This document shows positions 3,197 through 64,000 of a stretch of 64,000 nucleotides of DNA, piece after piece. Within the stretch, counting starts at the first letter, position 1; every line of letters starts with the position of its first letter. The DNA lies in the sequence record MN871444.1. One strand, given 5' to 3'. The translations under genes and the position numbers were made by a program. The notes under the pieces were generated by a model. The model saw only the letters and a list, made by a program, of their open reading frames with translations, searched no databases and was not told where the DNA came from.

Positions 3197-3230
3197 AAGG
3201 GAGGGCGAAAGCCCTCCCAATATGTTGTTA
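3191..3230. terminator. bidirectional terminator, dispersed repeat family member
   Basis: GCATAAAA-GGGAGGGC-gaaa-GCCCTCCC-AATATGTTGTTA between convergent genes. Confidence 0.85.
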
Positions 3231-11819: not shown

Positions 11820-11863
11820 TTTTCGGCTTCCCCACGGTTTATTACTACAGGAGATTGACGTCG

Positions 11864-21899: not shown

Positions 21900-21902
21900 A
21901 TT

Positions 21903-21940
21903 AACAACATATCGGGAGGGCTTTTGCCCTCCCTTTTATG
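21903..21940 (+). terminator. intrinsic terminator, dispersed repeat family member
   Basis: AACAACATATC-GGGAGGGC-tttt-GCCCTCCC-TTTTATG. Confidence 0.85.
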
Positions 21941-37745: not shown

Positions 37746-37834
37746 TGATAATGTGGTGGGTATGTCATCTCTTAGGGGGTGGCATACCTACCCATTATGT
37801 ATGCTCTTTTCTTTTGGACGTTGAGGAAGTTATT

Positions 37835-47909: not shown

Positions 47910-48269
47910 ATGGAGCTTGAACGTGTGGTTTACCACCCGGCTGGAATGATTGCTTATTATTCTGACGGTACGGTGGGTATACCAACCCAGGAAGATTTGG
48001 ATAACGCTGTCGGGGAGATTCTGCTTTATACCAAACATCGCGCTAAAAGAATTATTACGGACGTTTTAACTCACGGATACGATGAACTTAAATTTCGCAA
48101 CAATCCCACCAAGGATGAGTGTGGCGTTGTTGCGTTTCAGTTATTGTGGCATGCGCAAGACCACCTGAATGTGTTTCCCATTTTGTGGAAACCTTCTGGT
48201 GATAAACCATGGTACGAATGCCTGTATATGTCGGTCTGGGGAAATGGCTCTGATTTACGTCCGGTATAA
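47910..48269 (+). CDS. hypothetical protein (119 aa)
   Basis: GGGGG RBS before ATG 47910; ends at a terminator. Confidence 0.65.
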   Translation: MELERVVYHPAGMIAYYSDGTVGIPTQEDLDNAVGEILLYTKHRAKRIITDVLTHGYDELKFRNNPTKDECGVVAFQLLWHAQDHLNVFPILWKPSGDKPWYECLYMSVWGNGSDLRPV

Positions 48270-48271
48270 AA

Positions 48272-48301
48272 GGGAGAGGCTTCGGCCTCTCCCTTTTTTT
48301 A
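48272..48301. terminator. bidirectional intrinsic terminator
   Basis: AAAA-GGGAGAGGC-ttcg-GCCTCTCCC-TTTTTTT. Confidence 0.9.
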
Positions 48302-48359
48302 TGTTGTTTTTTTTTATTTATTCGGCGGTGGTTATTACGCCCCCCTTTTTTTTATGCTT

Positions 48360-50885
48360 TTATGCCAATGAGATAGTTGAGCGTGCTTCAACCCAGTCAG
48401 TGCCCAGAGTATTCGAACTCCCTGAGGTTAATCTATACCATCCGGCGATTACGTAGGTGTGGGTTAGGGTATTCGACCCTACCGTGATCGTTTGTGTCTT
48501 TATTGCTTTATCCAGATTTTTTGCGAAATAACCTGCCGGCCAATACCCAGTCGTAGGAACCGATGAGGTTGCCGACATGCCAGAAGCGTACTTTGTAGTC
48601 AAGTAAGTTGCGGACGTGGGATCGGAATCCTCCACTATAAAATCATCCGAGGTCATTTTTGGGATATACCTGACCCCTTTATTGTTGGTACTCCCCGCTA
48701 CAGTGAAATCATAGCCATCCGCCGGCTGACATAAATAAATATTGTTTTTTACAACACCCGTACCGCGGGTAGTTTCAGCACCGGTATTATTACGCATACC
48801 CCCTACGTCAGATACGCCAATAGCGCAGTTCCGAAATATATTATTTTTTGCAATAATTCCCGTGACATATGACCGACTAACCCCGGCTGGAACATCAGTA
48901 TTATTCCACCCGCCTCCAGAAGTTCGATAACTACTTTCTAAATACGGGTCTATGTCAAAAACATTGTCCGATACATTTAAAAATCCATAGGGTTGACCTA
49001 GTTTACTAGATGATGCAAAATTACCACCCGAGACATCCACTCCTGAAGTACCGAGGCGAATAAATTCGTTATCTTTAATAACAAGGTTATTAATAAACGT
49101 ACAATATTTTAAATTTATTCCTTTGTCTAACCCATAGAACAAATTGTCTTTTGCCACCAATCGATGTATTGCTGGAGTGGGGGTATACTGCCCAACCCTA
49201 GCTAATATTCCAGTCCCAGTGCGCATTGTGGACATTATCGGGTCTACCCATCCAGTAGGGCAAAATACTTTACCCAAACCCCATGATGAATATAGATTGG
49301 CGTCCGGTAACGTTCTAGTAAACTGGTTGCCGGAAATTCTTATATCTCTGATGCCAAATATTGGGGATGTTTTTGTGGTATTACCTGCACTCGCTAGGAA
49401 ATAGGTTTCTGGAAGGACAAAGGAATGTAATGCATAATCGAATTGGCCTGGGGGGACTGAGTTCGTTACTGCCACTTGTGGGTACGGTGAAATTAATATA
49501 CCTACGTTCCACAATGAGTCAGAACCTTGAGACGGGACGTTGGACCCCCCTGCGGCAAATACCGCGGGAGCCGGAATCATATCAGATATAAGGTTATCTT
49601 TTATATTGATTGCGGCCATATCGTTAGCACCTTCTGTACCACCACTCCAGCCAACCATAATCCCTAAATACTTGGTTCTATTCAATATGTTATTACTTAT
49701 ATTGGTGTACGTACCCCCCAAACAAGCGATACCGCAGGTATCAATCAATACATTATCAGTTATTACACATCCTCGATTGAGAGTTTGAGTGTACCCAACT
49801 AAATTAGATTTGTAGTCAGTTCCAGCGGCAATGGCGTTATCGCCACAATGCTCTATGTAATTTCCAGATACCACTGTGGAATGATTTCCACCTACTCGGA
49901 TGCCATCTCGCATCGAATTTTTTATAGTGCAGTTTTTTATTTCCGCCGACAAATTACTACCGGCCACAATACTGAATCCCCGACACCATAATACACTGAC
50001 GTTGGTTATGCTGACATTTTCGAAGTACTCAGCACGGATCGCCCCCTCAGTCCCTACAGTGGATGCATTGTAGTAGGTGCTGGTGTTAGTGCTATCATAG
50101 GCGAAGAAATTTCCTTCCACCCCAGTTATGGTAAAATCCCTTAACACGCAGTTTGCTGGTTTTGTCCCTGGATAATACAAAGAACCATAACTCATCATAC
50201 CACCCGCCCCGGCTTTGATATGAAAAACAGTCCTTCCTTCACCGGCCCCGATAATACAACCATAATGGTCAAATTGAGCATCAATCAGGTAGTGCCCAGC
50301 TGGGACATATAGTTGTTTATTTTGCAAATAAGCCGTTTTACAAGCGGTCTCCAATAATACTGACATGCCGAGTTGCAGAGAACCATTCTTAATATCGTCA
50401 TATTGGGTTGGGGTAATAAATTTGAAAAAACTTATCATATCCAATTCTGTTTTATGGATTACATTATCTAGTTCTGCCTGTACGGAATTTCCTTGCGTAC
50501 CCCCAAGAAAATTTGTTACTGTAGTGGTTATAAGTCCCGCCCCCAAACCCTCTTCACTTGAACGGAGGTTTTCGCGAAGCACTGAATCATTGCTGTATGC
50601 CCAGGCCCCAGAACCGATGCCACCGGTGGTGTCTGGCGTGCTTCCTGAGGGTACTGTTTTCGGGTAACTGCCGGTCCAAACCAAACGTTGGCCGCCATAA
50701 ACAATTTCTTCTTTTATAGACGTAATGGTAAAACCGACATCGAAAGATTTACTGGCGGTCAGGAAATTCGTCATTGGGATTTGATAATTACTCCCATCTT
50801 CGCTATACAGCAATGCCCCGGTGTTATAACCCAACCCGTAGGTCGGCAGGTCACTCAGGCGCTTTGCGATTACTCTACTGGTCAT
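48360..50885 (-). CDS. tailspike/depolymerase A (841 aa): anchor head, tailspike N-terminal domain and beta-helix body; currently expressed arm of switch 1
   Basis: GAGGT RBS before ATG 50885; KRLSDLPTY anchor; WTGSYPKTVPSGSTPDTTGGIGSGAW matches the Tail_spike_N-type motif; pectate-lyase-like repeats. Confidence 0.85.
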   Translation of the reverse strand: MTSRVIAKRLSDLPTYGLGYNTGALLYSEDGSNYQIPMTNFLTASKSFDVGFTITSIKEEIVYGGQRLVWTGSYPKTVPSGSTPDTTGGIGSGAWAYSNDSVLRENLRSSEEGLGAGLITTTVTNFLGGTQGNSVQAELDNVIHKTELDMISFFKFITPTQYDDIKNGSLQLGMSVLLETACKTAYLQNKQLYVPAGHYLIDAQFDHYGCIIGAGEGRTVFHIKAGAGGMMSYGSLYYPGTKPANCVLRDFTITGVEGNFFAYDSTNTSTYYNASTVGTEGAIRAEYFENVSITNVSVLWCRGFSIVAGSNLSAEIKNCTIKNSMRDGIRVGGNHSTVVSGNYIEHCGDNAIAAGTDYKSNLVGYTQTLNRGCVITDNVLIDTCGIACLGGTYTNISNNILNRTKYLGIMVGWSGGTEGANDMAAINIKDNLISDMIPAPAVFAAGGSNVPSQGSDSLWNVGILISPYPQVAVTNSVPPGQFDYALHSFVLPETYFLASAGNTTKTSPIFGIRDIRISGNQFTRTLPDANLYSSWGLGKVFCPTGWVDPIMSTMRTGTGILARVGQYTPTPAIHRLVAKDNLFYGLDKGINLKYCTFINNLVIKDNEFIRLGTSGVDVSGGNFASSSKLGQPYGFLNVSDNVFDIDPYLESSYRTSGGGWNNTDVPAGVSRSYVTGIIAKNNIFRNCAIGVSDVGGMRNNTGAETTRGTGVVKNNIYLCQPADGYDFTVAGSTNNKGVRYIPKMTSDDFIVEDSDPTSATYLTTKYASGMSATSSVPTTGYWPAGYFAKNLDKAIKTQTITVGSNTLTHTYVIAGWYRLTSGSSNTLGTDWVEARSTISLA
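50553..50578 (-). repeat. invertase crossover site A (hix/gix-like, core TC on the minus strand)
   Basis: Minus strand TTCGCGAAAACC-TC-CGTTCAAGTGAA; 18-bp exact inverted repeat with site B. Confidence 0.9.
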
Positions 50886-50909
50886 GTTGTTATACCTCAC
50901 GCAGTGGCG

Positions 50910-50940
50910 TCTTGTAAAAAATGATAAGCATAAAATGAGG
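50910..50940 (-). promoter_or_regulatory. 31-bp upstream element with TTTTATG (late-promoter-like), identical to 63595-63625
   Basis: CCTCATTTTATGCTTATCATTTTTTACAAGA on the minus strand upstream of tailspike A; TATG is the known phiKZ late promoter core. Confidence 0.75.
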
Positions 50941-50947
50941 TCGCACC

Positions 50948-52486
50948 GTGGTTCATTCAAACCTCCGTTCAAGTGATACTGGAAAAGGGGGTAGTTTAGT
51001 TAACACTATTATCGGGGTATCTGTGGGGGATTGGTTAGGCAATACCGTAATAACTCCAGACATGTTTTATACCTCTAATGATGCTGACTGGTCATCGGCT
51101 TTTTCTTTAGCCGCCGCCGCATGTACCAAATTAAAACTGCCCGTGACCTTATTACCTAGGACATATACTTTTAATAAGTCAGTAGATTTGACCATATTTA
51201 GTTATGGTGTTGTCTGCGATGCCTCCAGAAACAATAAGGTTATTTTTAAAGCAACGGATAATTCCACCAATGCTGAAGTTTTTGTGTCTATGAAAAACGT
51301 AGACCGTCGAAAAACAGGTGGATTTCTCATAGACGCCAATAATTTATTTGATGTCGGATTTGATACCACGTGGGATTTGACTGGCGGGCCTTCACTAATG
51401 ATGGTTTGGGAAAAAATACAGATTCAGGGATGGAGAACTATAGGGTGGCGTGCAAATAACAATAATGATGTTTGGAATAAAAATATTACCATTCTCGAGC
51501 CCGGGGCCGGCGTAATAGCAAATGCAGTTAGCTATTATAACCATAGTGCGGGAGGGCCGATTTCATTCGAAGGGTGTAGCTTCCAGGGAGGAAGAGTCCA
51601 AATTACCGCCCAACATATAAGTGCTACCTTTTGCGTGTTTAGGGGCATTGAAATAAAAACGGGAGGTTCTGGATGGAATACTTTTGCTGCGATGGGATGT
51701 CATTTTTTTAAAGATAGTTATTATAATGCATGCTTCACTTTCGCCGGTAACATTCAAGGGTTTACTGTGATTGGTGGGTTGGTTGAACCCACTGACGGTG
51801 GGGTGGTATTGCTGGGGCTGGGTACTGGTTATTTCAATTGCGGGCAATTGGAATTTATGAATACCAGAATTAGTTCCTATAACGCCACTGCACCTGCGGT
51901 GTTAGCCAGCGGAACTATGCTATCAGCTTACGGTAATACCACTATAAAAATAACGGGGGGCATTGCGGAACTGTCTTCTTATGACCCGACGACAATGGGT
52001 TGGGTAAACACCCTAGTCATAGATAAGGTCTTATTAAACCAATTAAACAACACCCCCATAACGCGTGTATTTTCCGGAACCACGTTACGTTACAATAAGC
52101 CAACGGTTGGAAACATCAGCGTCATTAATACCTCATCCACGGCATGTATTGTAACTGATTTACTAAACACGCTGACTACGACAAGTCGAAATTTTGGAAA
52201 TATTTCGGCCCTGGATGGAGCAAAAACAACCAGAAGTGGCGGGACAATAAAATTAGTCTATGCCGATGGCGGTGGGTACGCCGAATATAGATATGCACGT
52301 ACGGGCACCACAGCTGTAACTTTAACTTTAGTATCCGAAGCTTACGTAGACACTACAAGGCAATTATCCGTGTATAATTCCAGTTCTCAGTATGTTTATG
52401 TGGCTAATAGCCGAGCGGCCGGTTCAACTGGCGATTCCTGGACCCTACTAATATCGTTCACCGGCACCCTTGATTACATTCCATAA
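50948..52486 (+). CDS. headless tailspike body B (512 aa): alternative cassette of switch 1
   Basis: Lacks the anchor head; begins at site B in the same frame (SNLRSSD vs ENLRSSE); beta-helix-like sequence. Confidence 0.85.
   Translation: MVHSNLRSSDTGKGGSLVNTIIGVSVGDWLGNTVITPDMFYTSNDADWSSAFSLAAAACTKLKLPVTLLPRTYTFNKSVDLTIFSYGVVCDASRNNKVIFKATDNSTNAEVFVSMKNVDRRKTGGFLIDANNLFDVGFDTTWDLTGGPSLMMVWEKIQIQGWRTIGWRANNNNDVWNKNITILEPGAGVIANAVSYYNHSAGGPISFEGCSFQGGRVQITAQHISATFCVFRGIEIKTGGSGWNTFAAMGCHFFKDSYYNACFTFAGNIQGFTVIGGLVEPTDGGVVLLGLGTGYFNCGQLEFMNTRISSYNATAPAVLASGTMLSAYGNTTIKITGGIAELSSYDPTTMGWVNTLVIDKVLLNQLNNTPITRVFSGTTLRYNKPTVGNISVINTSSTACIVTDLLNTLTTTSRNFGNISALDGAKTTRSGGTIKLVYADGGGYAEYRYARTGTTAVTLTLVSEAYVDTTRQLSVYNSSSQYVYVANSRAAGSTGDSWTLLISFTGTLDYIP
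50952..50977 (+). repeat. invertase crossover site B (core TC)
   Basis: TTCATTCAAACC-TC-CGTTCAAGTGAT; inverted relative to site A. Confidence 0.9.
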
Positions 52487-52493
52487 TTAATGT

Positions 52494-52529
52494 AACATAT
52501 TGGGAGGGCAAAACCCCTCCCTTTTATGC
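52494..52529 (+). terminator. intrinsic terminator, dispersed repeat family member
   Basis: AACATATT-GGGAGGG-caaaa-CCCTCCC-TTTTATGCC. Confidence 0.85.
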
Positions 52530-52572
52530 CCGCGTTCTTTATCGTATGCACTTTTATAAAGGAGGGCACCAC

Positions 52573-53136
52573 ATGGGCTTTACCCCTAATTTCACCCTGT
52601 CCTCATATTACGTGGTTAATATTGGACTACCGTCTTCAGAATTGGTATTTGGATTAATTAACCACGATAACCATTCCACATTTGCCGCCTCTGATGTGTT
52701 CTTTGATATCCCTGCGAGCACTGCTCCGGGTAGTTTAAGAAACACGCAAATCACGTTATATCGTCAACCGCCATACGACTACGATTCGATGGTAGTGACT
52801 TATGACAGGTTAGACCTCGATGAGGCGTTAGAAAAACATCTGCCTATTATTTTGTCCCTTGAAGAAACCGATCTCAACCTCACCGATCTCATTCCTTATT
52901 TCAATAATACTTATAACCTATCTTTAATTGACGGTGAGGTTTTAGGAGGGGTTATCGATACGGTTGCAGATACAAATGCGTTCACCATCTCCGATTCCAG
53001 TTTAGCGTGGCGAGGCACCGTAGATTTTACAGCCATTGCTCTAGGCCATTCTTTAATGGTTGATGACACTGGGGAATACATCACGGTCGGAAATGGCCTT
53101 TTATTGGAAATCACGCCACCACCAACAAGTGAGTAA
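52573..53136 (+). CDS. tailspike adaptor-like paralog 1 (187 aa)
   Basis: LPSSELVFGLINHDN, YDRLDL and TISDSSLAW motifs shared with three paralogs; GGAGG RBS. Confidence 0.7.
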   Translation: MGFTPNFTLSSYYVVNIGLPSSELVFGLINHDNHSTFAASDVFFDIPASTAPGSLRNTQITLYRQPPYDYDSMVVTYDRLDLDEALEKHLPIILSLEETDLNLTDLIPYFNNTYNLSLIDGEVLGGVIDTVADTNAFTISDSSLAWRGTVDFTAIALGHSLMVDDTGEYITVGNGLLLEITPPPTSE

Positions 53137-53142
53137 AATAAC

Positions 53143-54918
53143 ATGGCACAGACAGTTGCGAAGAAAGGCCTGGCCGCACTCCCTGATTTGGGGAGCGTTA
53201 TGGGTGAAAACGGCTACTTTCATTATAATGAAGATGGGGTAGACTATCGTTTTCCTGTGGCTCTTTTAAGTCAAATTTCCGTACTTGCTGCCGCTACTGG
53301 CGCAAAAAGCATCGGCCTAGATTTAACAACCGTGTGGAACGTCCTTTCTGGGCGCACCCGCAATTTCTTTGAATTCCTCAGCGATGATAAAATCATTGCA
53401 GTGAAAGCCGGTGAAGATGTGGATGTTACCACAGAACTTCAAGCGGCAATGGATGCGAATTGTGCTATCAAAATACCTGACGGTAGCTATTTCGTGACGC
53501 AAGCTATCACCACGTCCATCAATTCTGGTTTGGTGGGTGATGGTCCTCGCAACTGCGTGATTGATAACCGCGGTATTGACCATCTTTTCAAATTCCCTTC
53601 TGGGTATAACCGTGGGTGGAAAGTGTGGTGTGGGTTTAAAATCAAATCCAGCAATCAGGCGGCACTCAAGAAATATGCCTTTTATTTCATGGGCTCCGCT
53701 GCGGCAGGGTATTTGGATTATGCTGCTTCCCATTGGTTCCAATTAATTGAGTTTGATGGTACCGGCATGGGTGGAGGTTGGTATCTCCAGGATTGTTTCC
53801 GGGTAACCATCCGGGACTGCGGCGCAACGGCACACGGCAACCCGTTCTATATTGCAGGTTCAGTAGTTCAACTTACCGTCGATAACTACGTCAACAATGG
53901 TGATAACGCCCCCGTCATGGACGTCGGGTCATACGGCGTATATATGACCAATAAAACGTACACCGATGGTAATGGCGTCAAGTCTCCAGAAGGCATCAAT
54001 TTTACTCATTGTAAATTTGTTAAACAGGCTGTTGGCGCTTATACGGTCGGATTATTTATCAACTTTTCTAAATGTGAATTTGATTATTGTTGGCAATACG
54101 GTGGGTATTATCGTGGTGGTAGTCAGGTCACGTTCGATATGTGCTATGTGGGTGCCCAAGCAAATCGACCTAATGATTTTGTGGGGTTCATGATCCCAGC
54201 ACAGGCGACGGGTGTTGCAGAAAAAGTTGTAGTTCATAAATGCACCATTAACATGCAAACGAACACAAATGCCAATGCCGCGAATTATGTCTCTAAAGGT
54301 ATCCAAATAGGTAATTCAACCGTGAACCCGATTGCGGCAGATATTGTCAGCAATACTTTCCGGGGAACAGGATACACCATCGGGATTCATGTGGCCCGGG
54401 GACTTGGCATTAAACTGGATGCCAATGCATTCCTATATACCGGCGTGGATATCCAGGTAGACGAATGTCGCACCTTATGGATGGCCAACAATACCACCAG
54501 TATTGATGATTCCGGTAATCCGCGCGGCACTTACAGCGTAACCACTACTGACAACAGTGCCGAATGGTTTATTGTTGGGAATGACGGAACGTTCACTACT
54601 AAAAGTATCGTCAACCCTGCCCGATGCATCATAATGAATCGGTATTGGACGCCCTACGTTACCAGAACTGCATGGTCACCGATAGCAGCAGTCAGTACGA
54701 GTATTTCTGCTGGCGGTACTTATTCATTCAGTATGGCCGCTACAGCGGATGCCAACGCCGTTTATTCTTTAGCGGGCATAACCGTTGCGGGGTTGCTTTG
54801 GAGTGTAGTTTATATTAACACCACCTCTGTTCGCGTGACCTTTTTTAATCCGACTGCCTCTACGATTACACTCAATGCTTCGTTGCGTGTGAAGACAGAG
54901 TGGCCTCCAGTGGGGTGA
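53143..54918 (+). CDS. tailspike/depolymerase C (591 aa)
   Basis: KKGLAALPDL...HYNEDGVDYRFP anchor; DVTTELQAAMDA...IPDGSY pectate-lyase-type start; beta-helix repeats. Confidence 0.8.
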   Translation: MAQTVAKKGLAALPDLGSVMGENGYFHYNEDGVDYRFPVALLSQISVLAAATGAKSIGLDLTTVWNVLSGRTRNFFEFLSDDKIIAVKAGEDVDVTTELQAAMDANCAIKIPDGSYFVTQAITTSINSGLVGDGPRNCVIDNRGIDHLFKFPSGYNRGWKVWCGFKIKSSNQAALKKYAFYFMGSAAAGYLDYAASHWFQLIEFDGTGMGGGWYLQDCFRVTIRDCGATAHGNPFYIAGSVVQLTVDNYVNNGDNAPVMDVGSYGVYMTNKTYTDGNGVKSPEGINFTHCKFVKQAVGAYTVGLFINFSKCEFDYCWQYGGYYRGGSQVTFDMCYVGAQANRPNDFVGFMIPAQATGVAEKVVVHKCTINMQTNTNANAANYVSKGIQIGNSTVNPIAADIVSNTFRGTGYTIGIHVARGLGIKLDANAFLYTGVDIQVDECRTLWMANNTTSIDDSGNPRGTYSVTTTDNSAEWFIVGNDGTFTTKSIVNPARCIIMNRYWTPYVTRTAWSPIAAVSTSISAGGTYSFSMAATADANAVYSLAGITVAGLLWSVVYINTTSVRVTFFNPTASTITLNASLRVKTEWPPVG

Positions 54919-54922
54919 TATA

Positions 54923-55444
54923 ATGGCGACGTATGTTCCCGATATTTCGTTGACTTCCGATGAGCTGGTATACCAGCTCATCAATAACGACAACGGTACT
55001 TATTATGATGCGGCCCATCTAACTCTGGGTGTTCCGTCAGTCAATACCACTGATTACTCAGACAAAAATACGCGCATTACTGTATCACATCCAAAATACG
55101 GTGCAATAGATGGCACCCTCCTTTATTACAATCGAATGGACATACAGAAGGTGTTTGATAATACCTTCCCTTTATTCGTTTGTTTAAATGGGGAATTAAC
55201 CGCCAGTGAGTTAGGTGCGTATTTCCAATCCACCTATGGTGTTGGCCTAGGTAGTGTTGACATATCTCCGACTATCATTTCTGGGACCACCAACACGGAG
55301 ATAGTTTTCACCATCTCCGATTCCAGTTTAGCCTGGTATGGCCAAACCCCAATGATGGTGGTTAGTAAAAGCCATTATTTTTACGGTACTCCGGACACTC
55401 TGGGGTATTACGTTTTATCTGATGGTAGTCTGTTGACTGCTTAA
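54923..55444 (+). CDS. tailspike adaptor-like paralog 2 (173 aa)
   Basis: LTSDELVYQLINNDN, YNRMDI and TISDSSLAW motifs. Confidence 0.7.
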   Translation: MATYVPDISLTSDELVYQLINNDNGTYYDAAHLTLGVPSVNTTDYSDKNTRITVSHPKYGAIDGTLLYYNRMDIQKVFDNTFPLFVCLNGELTASELGAYFQSTYGVGLGSVDISPTIISGTTNTEIVFTISDSSLAWYGQTPMMVVSKSHYFYGTPDTLGYYVLSDGSLLTA

Positions 55445-55455
55445 TGAGGGCTATC

Positions 55456-56115
55456 ATGGCAGGATTTTACATCGTTGATTTGTCCTTGCCATCTGATGAG
55501 ATGGTGTTAGGGTTAATCAACAATGACAATGAATTAGCATTGCGGATGGACGAAGTTAATTTGGGGGTAGCTCAAGTTAATACCGACGTCATAAGGCACC
55601 CCCGAGACACTACCATGCTCGTGACTAACGGGAAATACGCCAGAGATACATTACGGGTCTACTACGACCGACTCAGTATTGAGGATGTTATTTCCATGAA
55701 ATATCCCATCATTGTTCGGGGCGTGGCTGATGGTAATGTATCTGATCTACTGACCTACGTCAATTCTGAATATGGGTTGGGTTTGGTGCCAGCAGATATC
55801 GTCGATGCCGCATTAAGCGATTTGACTGAGGAAATTGCCAGCGCGGAACTGGACATGCAGTCGACTAACCGCGCTTGGTTGGGGTCGGTACCTATCCTCA
55901 TTCTCGGTGATGGCATGACTGTATTACGTCAGGAAGACGATGATGGCATCATGTTGTTATTTGATGATGATACTTACATCGCTGTAGGTAGTCCAGCATT
56001 CGCTATTGAGAACATGGTCACTTTGGCGGAAGGGCAGTCCGTATTAGTCACCCAGGCGGTAAACCCTATCACCGCGACAGATGGTACCTACTATCTGCTG
56101 CGTAGCGCAACGTAA
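55456..56115 (+). CDS. tailspike adaptor-like paralog 3 (219 aa)
   Basis: LPSDEMVLGLINNDN, YDRLSI and RAWLG motifs; GAGG RBS before ATG 55456. Confidence 0.7.
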   Translation: MAGFYIVDLSLPSDEMVLGLINNDNELALRMDEVNLGVAQVNTDVIRHPRDTTMLVTNGKYARDTLRVYYDRLSIEDVISMKYPIIVRGVADGNVSDLLTYVNSEYGLGLVPADIVDAALSDLTEEIASAELDMQSTNRAWLGSVPILILGDGMTVLRQEDDDGIMLLFDDDTYIAVGSPAFAIENMVTLAEGQSVLVTQAVNPITATDGTYYLLRSAT

Positions 56116-56129
56116 TAAGGAGAGCCGTT

Positions 56130-58040
56130 ATGGCCCAGACCCCCGTAACAAAAACACTGACTGATTTACCCGTATATTCCAATACCGGTTATGCTGGTCA
56201 TTTGTTGTACACTGATAGTAATATTGAATATCGATTACCTTTAAATTCTCTCGTACGAAAGTCAGAACTGGGAAATAGTGATGGGTTTAAGTATATTGGT
56301 CAAGTGGAATCATGGGCCGATTTACAATCGATTACATTAACCGAAGCTAACGTCGTCATTAAGTTAAAGTCATACGTTGCGGGCGGGGCTTTAACGGGAA
56401 CATCTCCTTCGGGTGGCGGATACTTCATTTCAGTATCGGGCACAGCCACTGACGACGGTGGTAGTATATGCGTACCTTCCGGACAAACTAATTTTTATCT
56501 TGTTCGAATCAGGGCAACAGATGAAATCAATCTATCCGAATATGGGTTGGTTCCTGGAGGTGAAATTGCAATACCTTTGATTAAAGCTGTGGCTTATTCA
56601 AGATCAGTGGGCATTACTAAAATAGTTATCCCGCCGTCATATGGCGAACAGTATTATACCTGGTCATCGCAGGTTAACGTTGACGTAACTAAATACCCTC
56701 TGACGTTAATGGGTGGTTCCGGTGAAAATATGAACGAAGTAATGGTGTACCATTACCCCACCGCGACTAATGAAGTGGCCATTGATTTTAGTACTACTTC
56801 GGCAGGGTCATCACCCACAGAAGCAGCATGCATCTGCGGTTTTTATTTTTATAATCAAAATACCGCCGTCAACGCATCTGCCATCCAGTTTTCAGATGCG
56901 TGGGCACATAAGGCCAGAAATTTATACATCACGCATTATGCGTTAAGCGCCGGGATTCGGATGGTTAATATCAACTCCTGGACCGAAAACTTCCAGGGAG
57001 AAAATTTAAATATCCGGCACTGCAAATATGGGTTTTGGTTGTACACCACAGGGTCCTGGCAATCGTTCTATGGAATGAAACTGGAGAAATATTATTTTAA
57101 CCACGGTAGCGCCGTAGGTGGGCCATCATATTCAATGTATCTTGGCAATGGCACTTCCACTGGATATGCATTCCTTTATGCTGCAGACTTGGATATGGGT
57201 GGTTGGCTGGGTACGACATATTCCACGGGACCTCACTGCGGCATATATCTTGCACCTTATTCTATCGTCATGGGCAAGTGCCGCATGAATTATGATGGTA
57301 CACAGCAAGCTAGTCTGGCAACTTATTTTACCGCCGTATACACGGCGTCAACCCAATGTATCGCGCGGCTTGATTTTACCAACAACAACGACCAGTTCTC
57401 TTATGTATCCATACAAGCCCCAGATTCTGCAAGCACCCTGAGTTATGCTCTTTGGGATAACTTAGCATATCCCGCATTAAATGGCTCTAAGACGTACGGG
57501 CGCTCAAACTGGATGAACGTGGCGATGGCGCGTTCCCCAATTATTTTATCTGGTGCACAACAAAAGTGGAAAACTACGGTGACTTCCACTAGCACTACCA
57601 AAACAGACCCCGGAATAATTAGGGTAGTCGGTTTACCAATATTATCAAATTTCAAAGTTGAGATTAAAACCAGCGGGACTAACCAGGTGTGCAATAGAAC
57701 ATTTATTGTTAATGTACATAACCAGGATTTGGTCGCCGCAGTAACAGAACAACAGCAATTGTCTGCAGGGACGGCAACAACAAGCACCTTTAACTCAACG
57801 ACCTCTACAGTTACCTCTATAAGCACCACAACGCTGACGCAATACTCGTCGTTCACAAATCAACGAGTTTATTGTCGCACATACAACGGCGTTCAGCCTG
57901 GGTATTATTCAGCTGGAAATGGTCAGACGTTCGATATCGTTATTCCTCCATCGACGTATAATGGCACCTCGGCTAATGCGGATGCGGTTGTGACGTCAGG
58001 ATTAACCACTGCGATTGAAATAATTATTACTCAGATTTAA
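56130..58040 (+). CDS. tailspike/depolymerase D (636 aa)
   Basis: KTLTDLPVY...LLYTDSNIEYRLP anchor; DGFKYIGQ...GGGYF...DDGG domain common in enterobacterial phage tailspikes; beta-helix body. Confidence 0.8.
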   Translation: MAQTPVTKTLTDLPVYSNTGYAGHLLYTDSNIEYRLPLNSLVRKSELGNSDGFKYIGQVESWADLQSITLTEANVVIKLKSYVAGGALTGTSPSGGGYFISVSGTATDDGGSICVPSGQTNFYLVRIRATDEINLSEYGLVPGGEIAIPLIKAVAYSRSVGITKIVIPPSYGEQYYTWSSQVNVDVTKYPLTLMGGSGENMNEVMVYHYPTATNEVAIDFSTTSAGSSPTEAACICGFYFYNQNTAVNASAIQFSDAWAHKARNLYITHYALSAGIRMVNINSWTENFQGENLNIRHCKYGFWLYTTGSWQSFYGMKLEKYYFNHGSAVGGPSYSMYLGNGTSTGYAFLYAADLDMGGWLGTTYSTGPHCGIYLAPYSIVMGKCRMNYDGTQQASLATYFTAVYTASTQCIARLDFTNNNDQFSYVSIQAPDSASTLSYALWDNLAYPALNGSKTYGRSNWMNVAMARSPIILSGAQQKWKTTVTSTSTTKTDPGIIRVVGLPILSNFKVEIKTSGTNQVCNRTFIVNVHNQDLVAAVTEQQQLSAGTATTSTFNSTTSTVTSISTTTLTQYSSFTNQRVYCRTYNGVQPGYYSAGNGQTFDIVIPPSTYNGTSANADAVVTSGLTTAIEIIITQI

Positions 58041-58050
58041 GGAAAAGAAT

Positions 58051-58332
58051 ATGTCGTTTACCAAAACTAGCATTTTAGAGTACAATAAATTATTTTATTC
58101 AATCGGGGCTGAAGTTACAGGGGGGTCTGAAGAAGTAATATTGACTTACACCGCTACCGGAATTAATTACGGCGGTAGGGAAATTGGTGATGTCGCAGAA
58201 ATAGTATTTTCTATTACGTGTGACTCGCCACAAATACAAACTAATTGTACCTCTGTTATTTCAGTTCAGTCGACCGATGCTGATGAAATATTAGCTCAGG
58301 CGGAATCGGAATTGCAAAAATCTTTGGGCTAA
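58051..58332 (+). CDS. small tailspike-associated protein, possibly an assembly chaperone (93 aa)
   Basis: AAGGA RBS; directly downstream of a spike gene; function inferred from position. Confidence 0.6.
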   Translation: MSFTKTSILEYNKLFYSIGAEVTGGSEEVILTYTATGINYGGREIGDVAEIVFSITCDSPQIQTNCTSVISVQSTDADEILAQAESELQKSLG

Positions 58333-58370
58333 AACAACATATCGGGAGGGCGAAAGCCCTCCCTTTTGTG
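58333..58370 (+). terminator. intrinsic terminator, dispersed repeat family member
   Basis: AACAACATATC-GGGAGGGC-gaaa-GCCCTCCC-TTTTGTG. Confidence 0.85.
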
Positions 58371-58422
58371 TGAAACTGTACGGCCCATTTTATGCTGATA
58401 AAATTTTATTGAGGGGTCTATT

Positions 58423-60885
58423 ATGGCAACGCTGCCGTCGTTGAAAAAAATATCGGATCTGCCGACCTACGGCAGTTCTTCGCCAGACTCAGGAACGATG
58501 CTGTACACCGAAAACGGGATTGATTACAAACTACCAATAAATACGCTAACCCGCGCAATTGATTTAGCATCCAACCTTTCTGGAAAAGGGGGTGGGTTAG
58601 TCGGATTAGAGCAGGGTGGAACCGTACAGTCAGCGTTACTGGGGTATATTAATGCAGCCGCCTTTGGCTATCTCGCCGATTATAACCCGGTGACTAATAC
58701 CGGTACGGATAATACCGCGGCACTTAGAGCGGCCGCCACGTACTGCTTACAGCATGGGATTAGAAAATTAATCCTTCCGCCGGGTATGGGGTTAATTTCC
58801 GATTATATTCCAATAGATGTCGGTACTGTGGGGGAAGCTGTTGCAGATCGATTTAAAGGATGTCAGGACGGGTTCCACATCCAAGGGGCTGGGATGTATT
58901 CCAGTTTATTGGTGTTTGATGCGCCTGATGCAGATACCCCAGCGATAAAAGCAACTGGAGATTGGGGGACCCACACGGCGCGCGCAATCAGTGATTTAGC
59001 GATCGTCCCCCGCACTACTGCCGCGTATAACGTAGATACGCTAGGTCAGGGTATCCAGTTTATTGGTGGGTGTTTCATCCCCATCAGAAACGTGGTGATT
59101 GGTAGATTCCATAAAGGGATTTGTTTCTGGAATAAAAATAAAGGCGTTAACGACACCGCAAATACATTCACTGCCGGGGATTTTACTGAATTTATTCGGG
59201 GCAACAATATACGCATATTCAACTGTGATATCGGTATCGATTTCATGGTTACTTTGGGCAACAATTCATTTCACGGCATTAACTTTACCCAAACCCAAGT
59301 GCAGATTAGAAAATATGGCGGTATTGGGGTTCGTTTTTATGATGACGGTTCTAGGGCCGCTATCGTCACACCTTCAAGCAATTACCAATTCATTGCTAAC
59401 GTTTACAATGCTAAATTAGATATAAATCTATTTGGTGATGACTCATCTACGTGCTATGGGCTCTATTTAAGCGGTGCCCAGGGTAGGGGGATGTCGGGAG
59501 ACATTACCTGCGAAGGGGCCATGACTCTCAAAACAAACAGTTTTGAATGGTATCAGAGTTTCGGTAGCCTACACTCCATATCTGCCATAAATCTTGAAAT
59601 TGGAGCCACTGATACTTCAACCAGACCGGTCGCATTTATGTTTTCTAATGCGGCATATCCCCAAACTTACTTTGATGGCAGTGATCCTACTTTATTAAGT
59701 ACGTCATACCCCCGCCAGTTTGATGGAAACAATCATGGCAATACTGGTATGGATTTATTAAATATTCGCGGGGCGCAATCTGGAAGTATCTGGTCCCAGG
59801 TCGCAAGCAACGTGTCGGTAGGGTGGATTTTTTCAACACGTACTACCGGTGGAAGCCGACCGGCTCAACGTACTGTCTGGCAATTTTCTTATGATGGCAC
59901 TCGCATATCTTCAGCCGGCACATCGGTCGGACTGTACAATTCAACAGTGGGGGTTGATTTAACTGCGGCGGCATTAGTCCCTTCTGGTAATACTACCTTG
60001 AATATTGGTTCGGCATCGTATCGATTCAACAGTGCTTATTTTAATGGTTGGAATATAGGTTCTGGCGGCGTTGTTCCTACTGCTGATGTGAGTTTTAACG
60101 TTGGTAGCTCTACTTTCCGAGTCAACCGGTCTTATGTTGCCTCTCGGTATTACACATCGACTGTATTTGATTCGTCGGGAACTGGTTCTCCCGAAGGGGT
60201 GGTTGCGGCAGCAATTGGTTCTACTTATCGCAGAACTGACGGTGGTGCAAATACATCGTTTTATGTGAAGGAATCTGGAACAGGCACTACGGGCTGGGTA
60301 TCCACTGGCTCAGTCAGGCCGTATGTTTCTGGCATGTTTGTGAGCCCAGGGAATCTGGTGTTGTCTGGAAACTACATATTTAAATATCTGGGTACTGCTG
60401 CAGATATTACCGTCGCTCCAGTACCTGGAACACTATGGAGTATGTTGATTCCAGGAGCTTCAGTAAAAATAAAAGCCACGGCAACTCAAACCACCACAAC
60501 GGGGACCAACACAGCCCTAACTTGGGCATCCGCTACCACGGAGTATAATAGTAGCAGTATTTATACGGTTGCTACTGCCGGAATTACTGTTCCAGTGGCC
60601 GGGATATATCGCATCGCCGGTAGGGTTGCTTTTGCTTCCAACAACACAGGTACCCGGTCAGCCGGAGTATTTATTAACGGCTCCTATTACGCTGGGTCTC
60701 AGGCTAGATTCGTTGCCAAATCCGGCGGGTATGCAACTACCGCAGATTACAATGACACGTTATCGCTTGCCGCTGGGTCGATTATTACGTTATCTGGATT
60801 CCAGGATTCTGGTGGGAACTTAGATACTGTTGCAACAGCCCCAGATGTATCTTTCCTGGTAGTCAGTTTGGTAAGCTACGTTTAA
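58423..60885 (+). CDS. tailspike/depolymerase E with C-terminal C1q/TNF-like domain (820 aa)
   Basis: KKISDLPTY anchor; DNTAALRAA...LILPPG beta-helix start; GSPEGVV...RTDGG...YVKESG motif; ITVPVAGIYRI C1q-like signature. Confidence 0.8.
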   Translation: MATLPSLKKISDLPTYGSSSPDSGTMLYTENGIDYKLPINTLTRAIDLASNLSGKGGGLVGLEQGGTVQSALLGYINAAAFGYLADYNPVTNTGTDNTAALRAAATYCLQHGIRKLILPPGMGLISDYIPIDVGTVGEAVADRFKGCQDGFHIQGAGMYSSLLVFDAPDADTPAIKATGDWGTHTARAISDLAIVPRTTAAYNVDTLGQGIQFIGGCFIPIRNVVIGRFHKGICFWNKNKGVNDTANTFTAGDFTEFIRGNNIRIFNCDIGIDFMVTLGNNSFHGINFTQTQVQIRKYGGIGVRFYDDGSRAAIVTPSSNYQFIANVYNAKLDINLFGDDSSTCYGLYLSGAQGRGMSGDITCEGAMTLKTNSFEWYQSFGSLHSISAINLEIGATDTSTRPVAFMFSNAAYPQTYFDGSDPTLLSTSYPRQFDGNNHGNTGMDLLNIRGAQSGSIWSQVASNVSVGWIFSTRTTGGSRPAQRTVWQFSYDGTRISSAGTSVGLYNSTVGVDLTAAALVPSGNTTLNIGSASYRFNSAYFNGWNIGSGGVVPTADVSFNVGSSTFRVNRSYVASRYYTSTVFDSSGTGSPEGVVAAAIGSTYRRTDGGANTSFYVKESGTGTTGWVSTGSVRPYVSGMFVSPGNLVLSGNYIFKYLGTAADITVAPVPGTLWSMLIPGASVKIKATATQTTTTGTNTALTWASATTEYNSSSIYTVATAGITVPVAGIYRIAGRVAFASNNTGTRSAGVFINGSYYAGSQARFVAKSGGYATTADYNDTLSLAAGSIITLSGFQDSGGNLDTVATAPDVSFLVVSLVSYV

Positions 60886-60894
60886 GGAGTTACC

Positions 60895-61413
60895 ATGCCA
60901 GCAAGTATGTATGTAGTGGATACGTCCCTACCCTCTGTTGATTTGGTCTACGGGCTTATCAACAACGATAACAACACGGTTTATAGTAAATCAACACTCA
61001 ACCTGGCTACGCCAGAAACAAATACCAATCCCGCGATTGATCGTAATAGTAAAATCCTGGCTTCGAACATCAAATACAGTAACAACACTTTGATGTTGTA
61101 TTACGATAGATTGGATATTGCTGACGTATTGCGCATGGAGTTACCCATCATTTTGTCGAATGTAACCGAAACCACGGTAGACCAAATGATGTGGTTTTTT
61201 AACTCCACGTACAAGATGGGATTGACCAAAGCTGAAATTAATGCGTCGGCAGTTGATTTAACCAATAACACCACTACGTGGACAATTGCGGATAATTCAA
61301 TGGCGTGGGTGGGAAATCTACCATTAACCATTTTACCATCCGGGTATGGCCTTTTGATTGATGAAACAAACAATCAATTGTTGGATGAAGATGGGTCATA
61401 TTTAATTTTATAA
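60895..61413 (+). CDS. tailspike adaptor-like paralog 4 (172 aa)
   Basis: LPSVDLVYGLINNDN, YDRLDI and TIADNSMAW motifs; AAGGAG RBS. Confidence 0.7.
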   Translation: MPASMYVVDTSLPSVDLVYGLINNDNNTVYSKSTLNLATPETNTNPAIDRNSKILASNIKYSNNTLMLYYDRLDIADVLRMELPIILSNVTETTVDQMMWFFNSTYKMGLTKAEINASAVDLTNNTTTWTIADNSMAWVGNLPLTILPSGYGLLIDETNNQLLDEDGSYLIL

Positions 61414-61417
61414 ATAG

Positions 61418-61456
61418 GGCATAAAAGGGAGGGCAAAAGCCCTCCCAATATGTTGA
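61418..61456. terminator. bidirectional terminator, dispersed repeat family member
   Basis: GGCATAAAA-GGGAGGGC-aaaa-GCCCTCCC-AATATGTTGA between convergent genes. Confidence 0.85.
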
Positions 61457-63001
61457 TTACACTGCGGTTCCCGTTGCATCAACCCATCCAGTATTTGTGG
61501 CATTTCGCCAAATGGGTTTATTCAAGGTAGTATCAAAATATTGATCCCCGGAATTAGAAAATGCATTCGGCCGCAACGCGGTAGTCCCAACCGCCACTGT
61601 CTGTGGCCCTACTTCATACCAGATGCCATTATACCGCCAAAATTCATATGTGTTGCCTAATCTACATGTTTTTCTTCCATCTGAAGTACATCCTTTTACT
61701 ACAAACGTCGAACTCCTTACTAGAGTAATATTTGCGTTTCCGTAGATTATAACACGTTGGCCCTTGACCCCGTTCAGTAAATCAGTTATATCCGTAGCCA
61801 CGGTATCTGTAGGTATGTATGTTTTCACACCTTCAACATTTGGTGTGCTGCCAGTACCTCGCTGATATCCATCGTACATAACGTGCAAAACCCCATTAAA
61901 CAAAGAATCAGAGATCGCTGAGGTTATATGCCCGGTGGATAGAAATGAAGCTATTCGGGGCTTTAAACTCATATCGGATTGATCCGCGGAAGAAATCCAT
62001 TCAATACCGTATTTGTGGGTTCCGTCAGCACGGCAGTTACTCAACTGACTGCGATTATCTAAAACAAATCCGCTATAAGTTCCACTCGCCCCATTTGAAT
62101 TATTAAGGGCATGACAATTACTCATTATGGCTGAGCCATAAAAACCATGACCATAATTTAAATCAGCGCGGCAATTGGTTAATTTATGCATGGCTCCCGT
62201 GGCTGACACACATATCCCAATTTCCGATAACTCCCCCTCCAAATTGACGGCGTAGTTATTTGCGCCACCCAGCAATATACCGCAAAGATACAATGATGTT
62301 GATTGTATCGCAGTAATGCCAGTATTACCCTGAATACGTTCAATAAAATTATCGGCGCCATTGAACACAAACACCCCGGTTCTTGCCGATCTCGAACGAT
62401 TTAATAAACAGTTTGTTCCAGAAAGATCTGAAAATTTTCCAATCAGAGCATTTGTAACCAATGCCTCATCGGAAAAATAATCCCACTTACATGCAGTGAC
62501 AATCCAGTCGTTTGACCCCGCACGAAGATTGACCCCACCACCAGGCAATGCTAACCCACCGCCTTTAAAATCAATCCCGATAATCCCACCACAGTCGCCA
62601 CCACCAGTAGGGGTATCTATAACCCATCCTGAAGTTGCCGGCGTAAACTGAGTACCGTACTTAGTTATGGACGCCCCGAAGGATAATATCCCACGCACAG
62701 CACCAAAGGTACAACCAATATGGCAGACGTTAGATTTATTTATAAAATTTAATTTATAAACCCCTCTAGGCCAGTAAATCCCACCACCACCTAACGAACT
62801 GACATAATCTACCAAGGCTTGCGCCGCTGCAGAATCGTCAGTTATGCCATCCCCAATAATACCATAATCCTTAGCATTAAAAACATCGCTTAAACGCGCC
62901 GCCAATGTTCTGGTAACTGATGGGCCATTTTGCGCGGCAAAAGACACCATGCTTGCGCCATCACTTGAACCCAGGTTTGAGGGAATATATGTCGACACCA
63001 A
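61457..63001 (-). CDS. headless tailspike body F (514 aa): alternative cassette of switch 2
   Basis: No anchor head; starts across site C (SNLGSSD); NAKDYGIIGDGITDDSAAAQA pectate-lyase-3 start; C-terminal GTTALRP...YFDTTLNKPIW...WVDATG motif. Confidence 0.85.
   Translation of the reverse strand: MVSTYIPSNLGSSDGASMVSFAAQNGPSVTRTLAARLSDVFNAKDYGIIGDGITDDSAAAQALVDYVSSLGGGGIYWPRGVYKLNFINKSNVCHIGCTFGAVRGILSFGASITKYGTQFTPATSGWVIDTPTGGGDCGGIIGIDFKGGGLALPGGGVNLRAGSNDWIVTACKWDYFSDEALVTNALIGKFSDLSGTNCLLNRSRSARTGVFVFNGADNFIERIQGNTGITAIQSTSLYLCGILLGGANNYAVNLEGELSEIGICVSATGAMHKLTNCRADLNYGHGFYGSAIMSNCHALNNSNGASGTYSGFVLDNRSQLSNCRADGTHKYGIEWISSADQSDMSLKPRIASFLSTGHITSAISDSLFNGVLHVMYDGYQRGTGSTPNVEGVKTYIPTDTVATDITDLLNGVKGQRVIIYGNANITLVRSSTFVVKGCTSDGRKTCRLGNTYEFWRYNGIWYEVGPQTVAVGTTALRPNAFSNSGDQYFDTTLNKPIWRNATNTGWVDATGTAV
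62960..62985 (-). repeat. invertase crossover site C (hix/gix-like, core TG on the minus strand)
   Basis: Minus strand TTCCCTCAAACC-TG-GGTTCAAGTGAT; 20-bp exact inverted repeat with site D. Confidence 0.92.
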
Positions 63002-63018
63002 CCCTCAAGGACATAAAA

Positions 63019-63570
63019 ATGATCTACGGTTATGCCCGAGTTTCTACTCAACATCAGGATACTACACTACAACTTATTGCGCTTCAGGCAGCCGGTTGCG
63101 ATGAAATTCGCGAAGAAAAAGCGTCTGGTAGAAGTAGAAACAGACCCGTATTGAAGAAACTGCTAACCGATCTTCAATCCGGCGATGAATTAGTATTGTG
63201 GAAAATAGACAGGATGGGTAGGAATGTATTACATGCCTTAACCTGGTTGGCTGAGCTGCAGGATAAGAATGTAAACCTCAGGTCAATCACCGACGCTATC
63301 GATATGCGTACTGCTTCTGGCCGTTATAGTTTTCGCAATATTTTGAATGCCGCACAGTACGAATCGGACGTAAATAGCGAAAGAACCTTGGCTGGACTAG
63401 CTGCAGCCAGAGCACAAGGTAGGGTGGGTGGAAGAAAACCAACAATGACCGAACCCGTTTTGGAGAAAGCACGGGATTTAATAAATGCCGGAAATAATTA
63501 CCGTGAAGTAGCTGAAGTCATCGGAGTGACCACAAAAACGATATACAAATATTTTCCAGTCAATTCATAA
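63019..63570 (+). CDS. serine DNA invertase, Hin/Gin/Pin family (183 aa)
   Basis: YARVST catalytic Ser9, LVLWKIDRMGR, ERTLAGLAAARAQGRVGGR and C-terminal HTH VIGVTTKTIYKYFP; AAGGA RBS before ATG 63019. Confidence 0.95.
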   Translation: MIYGYARVSTQHQDTTLQLIALQAAGCDEIREEKASGRSRNRPVLKKLLTDLQSGDELVLWKIDRMGRNVLHALTWLAELQDKNVNLRSITDAIDMRTASGRYSFRNILNAAQYESDVNSERTLAGLAAARAQGRVGGRKPTMTEPVLEKARDLINAGNNYREVAEVIGVTTKTIYKYFPVNS

Positions 63571-63577
63571 TTTTTTG

Positions 63578-63606
63578 ATGAGGCGGCTTGGCCGCCTCAT
63601 TTTATG
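63578..63606 (+). terminator. invertase terminator
   Basis: ATGAGGCGGC-ttg-GCCGCCTCAT followed by TTTATG. Confidence 0.75.
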
Positions 63607-63625
63607 CTTATCATTTTTTACAAGA
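63595..63625 (+). promoter_or_regulatory. 31-bp upstream element with TTTTATG (late-promoter-like), identical to 50910-50940 on the minus strand
   Basis: Exact match by manual comparison; lies just before the RBS of tailspike G. Confidence 0.75.
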
Positions 63626-63634
63626 GGGGCTATC

Positions 63635-64000
63635 ATGGCCAACAGAGCGATTACGAAGAAAATTAGTGCTTTGCCGACCTACGCACTGAACAACAATAAC
63701 GGCAATTTACTGTATAGTGAGGGGGGTGCAAATTACCAATTTCCGTTGAGTAATATTGCCCTTCTTTCAAACCTGGGTTCAAGTGAAGTGGGTAAAGGGG
63801 CGAGTCTGATAGGGACATCAGACGGTAGCAATTTACAACAAATTGCAACAGTAGTAAGTGACCAACTTATAACCAACCCACAAATTGTTGCTGGCGACAA
63901 CATGTCCGTTTTAGACCGAATCAAAGTCAAAGGCCAGTATGACATCAACCCGGCACCTCAGGAACCCCAAGCCGCAGTAGGTATTACTTTTGGAGGGCAG
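63635..64000 (+). CDS. tailspike G, 5' part (runs off the window); currently expressed arm of switch 2; not in the ORF track
   Basis: GAGGGG RBS; manual translation MANRAITKKISALPTYALNNNNGNLLYSEGGANYQFPLSNIALLSNLGSSEVGKGASLIG... is open to the window end. Confidence 0.9.
   Translation, partial: MANRAITKKISALPTYALNNNNGNLLYSEGGANYQFPLSNIALLSNLGSSEVGKGASLIGTSDGSNLQQIATVVSDQLITNPQIVAGDNMSVLDRIKVKGQYDINPAPQEPQAAVGITFGGQ
63762..63787 (+). repeat. invertase crossover site D (core TG)
   Basis: TTCTTTCAAACC-TG-GGTTCAAGTGAA; left arm is 10/12 identical to the hixL arm TTCTTGAAAACC. Confidence 0.92.

Follow-up and report, generated by a model that had tools for sequence, protein, structure and literature searches.

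Host-range switching by DNA inversion is a textbook trait of temperate phages such as Mu and P1. The G segment of Mu (inverted by Gin), the C segment of P1 (Cin) and the P segment of e14 (Pin) have in common an enzyme family, recombination sites of 26 bp and the half-site TTC-N4-AAACC. In Mu and P1 the promoter and the constant 5' part of the gene are fixed outside the segment, and the alternative 3' parts lie inside it together with their chaperones. The crossover in the Gin, Cin and Pin systems takes place within a tail-fibre or spike gene and yields in-frame alternative receptor-binding proteins with alternative adsorption specificity (PMC12529663, PMC3575834). Here we describe a related locus of reversed geometry in Serratia phage KpGz_1, found in a stretch of 64,000 nucleotides of record MN871444.1 (hereafter the window). 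Positions 48000-64000 of the window, which correspond with 100% identity to record positions 110000-126000, contain one serine DNA invertase gene and two predicted cassettes. In each cassette, inverted 26-bp sites situated inside coding sequence would enclose a promoter-like element and the 5' anchor part (head) of a tailspike gene, and two bodies, predicted to be depolymerase-like beta-helices, stand outside. We consider it likely, with a probability of roughly 0.8, that the Gin/Pin-type invertase of KpGz_1 flips both cassettes and thereby joins each head to one of two bodies. At the peptide N-L-(R/G)-S-S, inversion would connect the head, with the reading frame kept, to either of two fixed, divergent and promoterless bodies, so that only one body of each pair would be made per genome.

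The locus thus would work like the Mu and P1 systems but stands outside their family by its architecture. The first-pass annotation, made from the sequence alone, had described the geometry as reversed, and our analysis bears this out, as the head and the promoter-like element are the mobile parts and the bodies stay in place. KpGz_1 also differs from Mu and P1 in having two insulated switches in one genome, and in being a 269-kb, obligately lytic phage with its own RNA polymerases and, judged by its genus, a phage nucleus, whereas Mu and P1 are temperate and do not exceed 126 kb; a prophage in which inversions build up is not part of its life cycle. The Hin (H) segment of Salmonella is arranged as site, invertase gene, outward promoter and site (PMC3798978, PMC2724282), which is also the layout of the segment with the invertase gene in KpGz_1, where the promoter is a predicted one. 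Hin flips a promoter only and switches transcription ON or OFF, whereas the sites of KpGz_1 lie in coding sequence, would give translational fusions and have targets on both sides. A precedent in logic is the Mycoplasma pulmonis vsa locus, in which a promoter and a 5' coding part are moved to silent 3' genes (PMC2268961). The same mobile-expression-site logic is found there in a bacterial system of lipoprotein antigenic variation, which differs from KpGz_1 in its tyrosine recombinase HvsR and its many silent genes. In the Min system of p15B and the R64 shufflon, the latter with a tyrosine recombinase, multiple inversions rearrange 3' segments, and the 5' part in front of them is fixed. The related phage KpHz_2 (MN871445.1) is like these two in having more than two sites per set and unlike them in that the head rather than the 3' parts would be mobile. 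Given the vsa precedent for a mobile promoter and 5' coding part, the candidate of the first-pass annotation is not categorically new. What is new is the combination, the host, a virulent, nucleus-forming jumbo phage, the pairing of two insulated switches with one enzyme, and the three-body form in KpHz_2. Our literature searches returned no report of an inversion switch in a virulent jumbo phage and no mention of an invertase in papers on Eowynvirus, the genus of the described relative of KpGz_1.

The pattern TTC-N4-AAACC-NN-S-GTTCAAGTGA matched the window exactly four times without mismatches, at 50554-50578 (- strand), 50952-50976 (+), 62961-62985 (-) and 63762-63786 (+), where shuffled sequences gave a chance expectation of 0.03. 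When all 269 kb of the genome were scanned piece by piece with up to three mismatches, no fifth site was detected. The full 26-bp sites, A (50553..50578, -), B (50952..50977, +), C (62960..62985, -) and D (63762..63787, +), form the inverted-repeat pairs A/B and C/D, as had been proposed. Each has a 2-bp core with a 12-bp half-site on either side, the two half-sites being imperfectly symmetric; the core is non-palindromic and identical within a pair (TC for A/B, TG for C/D). The left half-site TTC-N4-AAACC equals that of the e14 P-segment (Pin) repeat (PMC12529663), and the right half of C and D, when read on the opposite strand, agrees with it at 7 of the 8 specified positions; from this match and the two-fold symmetry the sites are assigned to the 12 + 2 + 12 type of Hin, Gin and Pin. 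The head-side half-site of A, TTCGCGAAAACC, also accompanies the same head in KpHz_2, in Klebsiella phage vB_KvM-Eowyn and in the metagenomic relatives L040 and L044. All four sites encode the peptide N-L-(R/G)-S-S-(D/E) in frame and open into a body, and the frames are likewise in register at all six sites of KpHz_2. Scans of IMG/VR with the site pattern and the invertase revealed no relatives and 14 unrelated single-site loci; a scan of JGI metagenomes with the 25-mer pattern gave six single-site matches, all unrelated. Among the 14 IMG/VR loci only L005 (IMGVR_UViG_3300011613_000018), an unrelated viral contig, has an invertase (48% identity), together with the core-plus-half-site AAACC-NN-S-GTTCAAGTGA, so that the half-site is common to at least one other Gin-like system.

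Segment 1 (50579-50951, 373 bp) reads on the minus strand as a promoter-like leader (50889..50951) followed by the 103 codons of head 1 (50579..50888, ATG at 50888), which comprise an N-terminal anchor and a Tail_spike_N-like Pfam domain. Head 1 has 98% amino acid identity to the KpHz_2 head, with a ratio of nonsynonymous to synonymous substitution rates (dN/dS) of 0.025. Across site A the frame continues into body A (48360..50553, -), which has matches to the Pfam families Beta_helix and Pect-lyase; the present fusion (48360-50888) encodes 842 amino acids, and Tail_spike_N falls in its head part. Body B (50978..52486, +) is headless at present and offers 503 open codons in frame with site B. 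Segment 2 (62986-63761, 776 bp) consists of the invertase gene, a hairpin terminator, a 31-mer identical to one in the leader of segment 1, and the 42-codon N-terminal anchor of head 2 (63635..63761, +; ATG at 63635). Head 2 is currently fused to body D (63788..64000, +), which is cut by the window end and belongs to a gene of 563 amino acids in locus L017. On the other side lies the headless body C (61457..62959, -), in register with site C and assigned to the Pfam family Pect-lyase_RHGA_epim. Neither B nor C has a start of its own; stops occur a few codons upstream of the sites, and about 500 codons are open in the head frame. With all four sites read through in this way, the arrangement described earlier, pairs of sites around a promoter-like element and a 5' head with divergent in-frame bodies outside, was confirmed.

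In a search of 5.8 billion proteins, every homologue found for body B, C or D had an N-terminal head of some kind, be it T7-like, P22 head-binding, Tail_spike_N or another type; this includes all of the more than 60 homologues of body C. In public data, head 2 in turn is attached to six or more different bodies, and the joint always lies at or next to S-N-L-G-S (SNLGSS). Head 1 is joined to a B-type body in P0001, the single fixed spike of a third phage, whose body is 89% identical to body B. A model of body B of moderate quality (predicted local distance difference test, pLDDT, 66) gave significant E-values only to phage tailspikes and tail fibres, namely those of Acinetobacter phage P1 (6e1r), Klebsiella phage Kp9 gp42 and Kp7 gp52, with low template modelling scores (TM-scores), and serves as support for tailspike-likeness only. 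A head-2 leader and head 99.4% identical to those of the window were also seen on contig L028 (ENA ERZ1744937 NODE_987, coverage 1.9), adjoining bacterial-looking genes (TonB, MTHFR, DNA polymerase III delta'); this contig may be a chimera of low coverage.

The invertase gene (63019..63570, +) encodes 183 amino acids with matches to the Pfam families Resolvase (3.6e-36, residues 2-135) and HTH_7 (residues 138-180). Residues 1-181 aligned with residues 1-181 of Mu Gin (PDB 4m6f/3uj3; E 5e-45), and the catalytic Ser9 in the motif Y-A-R-V-S-T takes the position of S9, the linking serine of Gin (PMC3575834). Nothing in NCBIfam scored above threshold, and the protein gave only weak matches to other serine recombinase models. 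It is the only serine recombinase gene in a scan of the whole genome, in agreement with the single invertase claimed before, and we infer that it catalyses both switches. Its identity to Gin and Cin is 44-47% (tblastn). The closest phage invertases in 50,697 phage records, and its nearest GenBank phage relatives by protein sequence, are the Pin-like proteins of phi80 (PinL), HK225 and mEp237, with about 62% identity over the full length. These temperate siphoviruses of 41-46 kb resemble KpGz_1 in the invertase sequence and are a plausible source of the gene. Among the matches listed for the 134 matching records, all phages except KpGz_1 and KpHz_2 have genomes of at most 126 kb, and most invertase-bearing phages are recognizable temperate types (P1, Mu, P2-like, lambdoid).

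The orientation of the segments in related genomes, a check that the first-pass annotation had suggested, supports real inversion, as both segments were found in both orientations between close relatives. For switch 2, an identical invertase protein is encoded by two Logan contigs, L035 (83 kb) and L036 (29 kb), and their segments 2, from site through invertase, leader and head 2 to site, are co-linear and 98.9% identical. A body designated alpha (99.1% identical between the two) lies on the head-2 side in L035, where it forms a product of 677 amino acids with head 2 at its start; in L036 it lies on the invertase side, reversed and headless. The conserved downstream gene block (98.7% identical) flanks segment 2 on opposite sides in the two contigs. 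The protein sequence after S-N-L-G-S-S is identical in the fused and the headless copy of body alpha, and the dN/dS between the copies is 0.05. The switch-1 loci of relatives were reached through cluster members of a DUF7941 protein of the window. L044 has a right flank 98.0% identical to the window and two perfect TC sites, and carries the head-1 segment in reverse (92.9% identity), which makes head 1 read into the right-hand body and leaves a headless body on the left; the same JGI sample yielded L039, with an invertase 100% identical to that of the window. The 90-kb ENA scaffold L040, whose left flank is 95.8% identical to the window, has its head-1 segment reversed in the same way. In L040 and L044 the reversed blocks end a few bases from the outer edges of the sites.

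Several points weigh against an active switch in KpGz_1. The opposite states were compared between relatives rather than among the reads of one lysate; these relatives are close and non-isogenic, and their neighbouring cassettes differ. At both switches, the deposited sequences of KpGz_1 and KpHz_2 agree in orientation. The system is dispensable, as several relatives no longer possess the invertase and are locked in one state. The promoter call depends on one short motif. No candidate for a Fis-binding enhancer was detected, nor any stretch of suppressed synonymous variation in the seven invertase genes, which is a weak test given that Fis sites are degenerate; furthermore, the phage nucleus of the genus (PMC13757433) might keep host Fis out.

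Some of these points favour the first alternative, that the arrangement is a frozen relic in which the invertase of KpGz_1 is silent, inactive or deprived of its cofactor in the nucleus and the bodies persist as evolutionary spares. Such a relic would account for the shared deposited orientation of KpGz_1 and KpHz_2; degenerate sites and the loss of the invertase in several truly frozen relatives are in line with it, and the undetected enhancer agrees with the need of wild-type Hin and Gin for Fis and supercoiling (PMC3798978). The selective record speaks against it. None of the four sites is imperfect. In seven genomes the invertase is intact and under purifying selection, and third codon positions account for 79 of its 91 variable sites. 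The copies of body B in KpGz_1 and KpHz_2, both headless, are 90% identical in protein and 79% in nucleotide sequence, with a dN/dS of 0.019 at saturated dS, and the headless B-type copy of KpHz_2 compared with the head-fused copy in the third phage gave 0.04. A dN/dS of about 0.02 at saturated dS indicates that the silent bodies need recurrent expression. As the opposite states between phages of about 99% identity are also difficult to reconcile with a relic, we regard this explanation as unlikely.

A second alternative assigns the joints to homologous or illegitimate recombination and cassette exchange at the linker during co-infection, and another role to the invertase. The linker N-L-x-S-S/G-x-G-x-x-L-(I/V)-G indeed marks module boundaries of Klebsiella phage spikes in general, where it follows many unrelated heads, and the neighbouring cassettes of L035 and L036 differ, as exchange would have it. 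On the other hand, the repeats are just 25-29 bp long with the breakpoints inside the sites; their half-sites have the two-fold architecture known from Pin-type sites, their asymmetric core is identical within pairs, and the invertase gene resides inside one segment, as in Hin. In addition, the fixed spikes of KpGz_1 have the linker peptide in common with the switchable ones and do not have the DNA site. Cassette exchange is therefore considered improbable. Mis-orientation of inverted repeats during assembly, to which the many short related contigs ending at repeated hairpins or the 31-mer might point, hardly deserves credence, because the repeats, at 25-26 bp, do not reach the length of the assembly k-mer, both sites are crossed without a break in independent contigs that stem from different samples and assemblers, and the predicted fusion reading frames are open and full length.

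For the favoured interpretation, inversion by the invertase, the two core dinucleotides are of particular relevance. In every relative that we examined, head-1 sites have a TC core and head-2 sites a TG core, a difference between the leucine codons CTC and CTG that is silent in the protein. In Hin, a change of a single core base in one site stops ligation in the inverted orientation (PMC4817059). Since serine recombinases must re-pair the 2-nucleotide overhangs and the cores differ, the two switches are expected to be independent, and the core difference would insulate them. Such a mismatch would block inversions of 12-13 kb that pair A with D or B with C, as well as deletions between the direct pairs A/C and B/D. 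With independent states, 2 x 2 combinations would be available in KpGz_1 and 3 x 3 in KpHz_2. The bodies may bind different receptors, in which case KpGz_1 would have four virion types, the receptor code put forward in the first-pass annotation.

The label of a lytic, phiKZ-like jumbo phage is supported by the split RNA polymerase beta subunits of phiKZ type encoded in the window (PHROGs 3148 and 2986, next to tail sheath and terminase genes) and by the description of the genus. Another Eowynvirus possesses a nuclear shell protein, PhuZ, two RNA polymerase gene sets and a circularly permuted genome and is obligately lytic (PMC13757433). The nucleus traits ascribed to KpGz_1, chimallin and PhuZ, are taken from this description. 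For a lytic phage without a prophage stage, inversion must occur during replication in the infected cell, and the switching would thus belong to lytic replication; progeny genotypes would be mixed, and the spikes of a virion might not match its own genome. Wild-type Hin and Gin require a Fis-bound enhancer and negative supercoiling, a need which single changes in helix E lift (PMC3798978, PMC3575834, PMC4513852). At the positions of the Hin lock and ratchet residues F105, H107, M109 and L112 and of Gin M114 (PMC4513852, PMC3575834), S, R, I, A and Y are found in the phage enzyme, which retains two of the three enhancer-contacting basic residues of helix B. Because the lock and ratchet positions differ, its regulation may differ from that of Hin and Gin. 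The complete scenario would be a lytic-cycle switch with an invertase altered at the helix-E lock, acting Fis-free or with a phage cofactor in the nucleus, that produces from four (KpGz_1) to nine (KpHz_2) bet-hedged genotypes per burst, with virions that are possibly phenotypically mixed and switches insulated by the silent one-base core difference; as a whole it is tentative, and we would give it slightly less than even odds.

Should the switch be active, a strictly lytic Klebsiella phage holds hidden depolymerase specificities which are invisible in the deposited orientation, with a bearing on how the stability of phage preparations is judged. Such hidden bodies are annotated as headless reading frames or overlooked, which affects host-range prediction from the genome. 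The mechanistic question is how an enzyme family dependent on Fis and supercoiling would act on DNA inside a phage nucleus, and the differing core dinucleotides of two switches with one enzyme constitute a compact natural case of orthogonal recombination sites.

The genome of KpGz_1 (269,351 bp, stated host Klebsiella pneumoniae) is unannotated, and its GenBank relatives are KpHz_2 and vB_KvM-Eowyn (genus Eowynvirus; NC_070650, L001). The headers of MN871444.1 and MN871445.1 carry an UNVERIFIED_ORG flag and the name 'Serratia phage' despite the Klebsiella pneumoniae host. As both records lack annotation, the headless bodies and the invertase have been left undescribed in GenBank. Comparison within the group revealed elaborated and decayed versions of the system. 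Sites of either kind, TC and TG, are present three times each in KpHz_2; one TC site fronts a B-type body at the far left, and the extra TG site with a body of its own lies upstream of the gene for the spike of the 820-amino-acid type. With three sites per set, nested inversions would give each head three bodies, and one of these inversions would flip a 5.8-kb block that contains a fixed spike gene. In Eowyn and several metagenomic relatives no invertase was found. The Eowyn-type relatives have one intact TC site within a single fused spike and a degenerate TG site, and they retain short remnants of the 5' end of a body and of the 3' end of the invertase gene. Head 2 is frozen on the left-hand body in L042 and on the right-hand body in L027 and Eowyn. 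The system therefore looks ancestral to this phage group, active in some lineages and decayed in either state elsewhere. The Eowyn gene PP187_gp232 ('hypothetical protein') overlaps a remnant of the 5' end of a body-C-type spike and a partial site and probably represents a relic, not a gene. In L037 one spike body downstream of head 2 is broken once into two open reading frames.

The promoter-like 31-mer at 50910-50940 is a 100% inverted copy of that at 63595-63625. The sequence CATTTTATGCT occurs only three times in the 269-kb genome, each time upstream of a spike head: of head 1, of head 2 and, as the third copy of the element (58381..58427, +), of the fixed spike of 820 amino acids. It includes TATG, which alone is conserved among phiKZ late start sites (PMC7598289), and on this basis the 31-mer is the putative promoter of both heads. 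A scan for sigma-70 promoters revealed no enrichment (39 found, 37.5 expected), which fits a phage with its own RNA polymerases. The strong hairpin terminator behind the invertase gene in segment 2 (63577..63625, +) overlaps the 31-mer, and its descending arm contains the start of the promoter-like element. The last four bases of this hairpin persist in segment 1, adjoining site B, and this remnant suggests that the leader of segment 1 was copied from that of segment 2. Further hairpin terminators follow body B (52502..52521, +) and body C (61427..61446, -), the latter also ending a DUF7941 gene on the plus strand. These belong to a recurrent G+C-rich terminator, GGGAGGGC-N4-GCCCTCCC, that is present in both orientations across the genome and often followed by TTTTATG, with copies at 52502-52521, 58344-58363, 61427-61446, ~3191-3230 and ~21897-21940. 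Many short-read contigs of relatives stop at these repeated hairpins.

The window also encodes three fixed spikes on the plus strand (53143-54918, 56130-58040 and 58423-60885, the last of 820 amino acids), which have the same N-terminal anchor as the switchable heads and alternate with DUF7941 genes. The anchor, about 44 residues with the pattern K-K-[I/L]-x-x-L-P-x-Y ... Y-[Q/R/K]-x-P, is common to seven genes of KpGz_1, namely head 1, head 2, the three fixed spikes and two more past the window end; a neighbouring protein of 575 amino acids does not have it. Three fixed spikes had been proposed earlier, a number that is right for the window and too low for the genome, which adds the two anchor-bearing spikes and one further large protein. 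From the seven anchor genes, the particle would have five fixed and two switchable spike positions. The DUF7941 proteins are small paralogues of 172-223 amino acids (52546-53136, 54923-55444, 55444-56115 and 60895-61413; 16089-16610 in L017). Their genes come after most of the spike genes and are annotated as 'virion structural protein' in Eowyn; their products may serve as adaptors in a spike complex that is branched. Some relatives (L027, L037) have one paralogue in reversed orientation. The inverted DUF7941 copies in L027 were considered as an assembly hairpin, which was rejected, as copies of 88% identity are true paralogues.

Two further reading frames of the window deserve mention. The terminase large subunit (37745-40774, +) comprises 1009 amino acids with phrog_2 as best match; about 578 of 807 profile positions are spread over about 910 residues, which suggests a large insertion, perhaps an intein or a homing element. 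The reading frame at 5400-11876 (-) encodes 2158 amino acids with a match to a 'tail fiber' PHROG and a C-terminal transglycosylase, and its product is probably a virion-associated lysin or a tail-tip protein.

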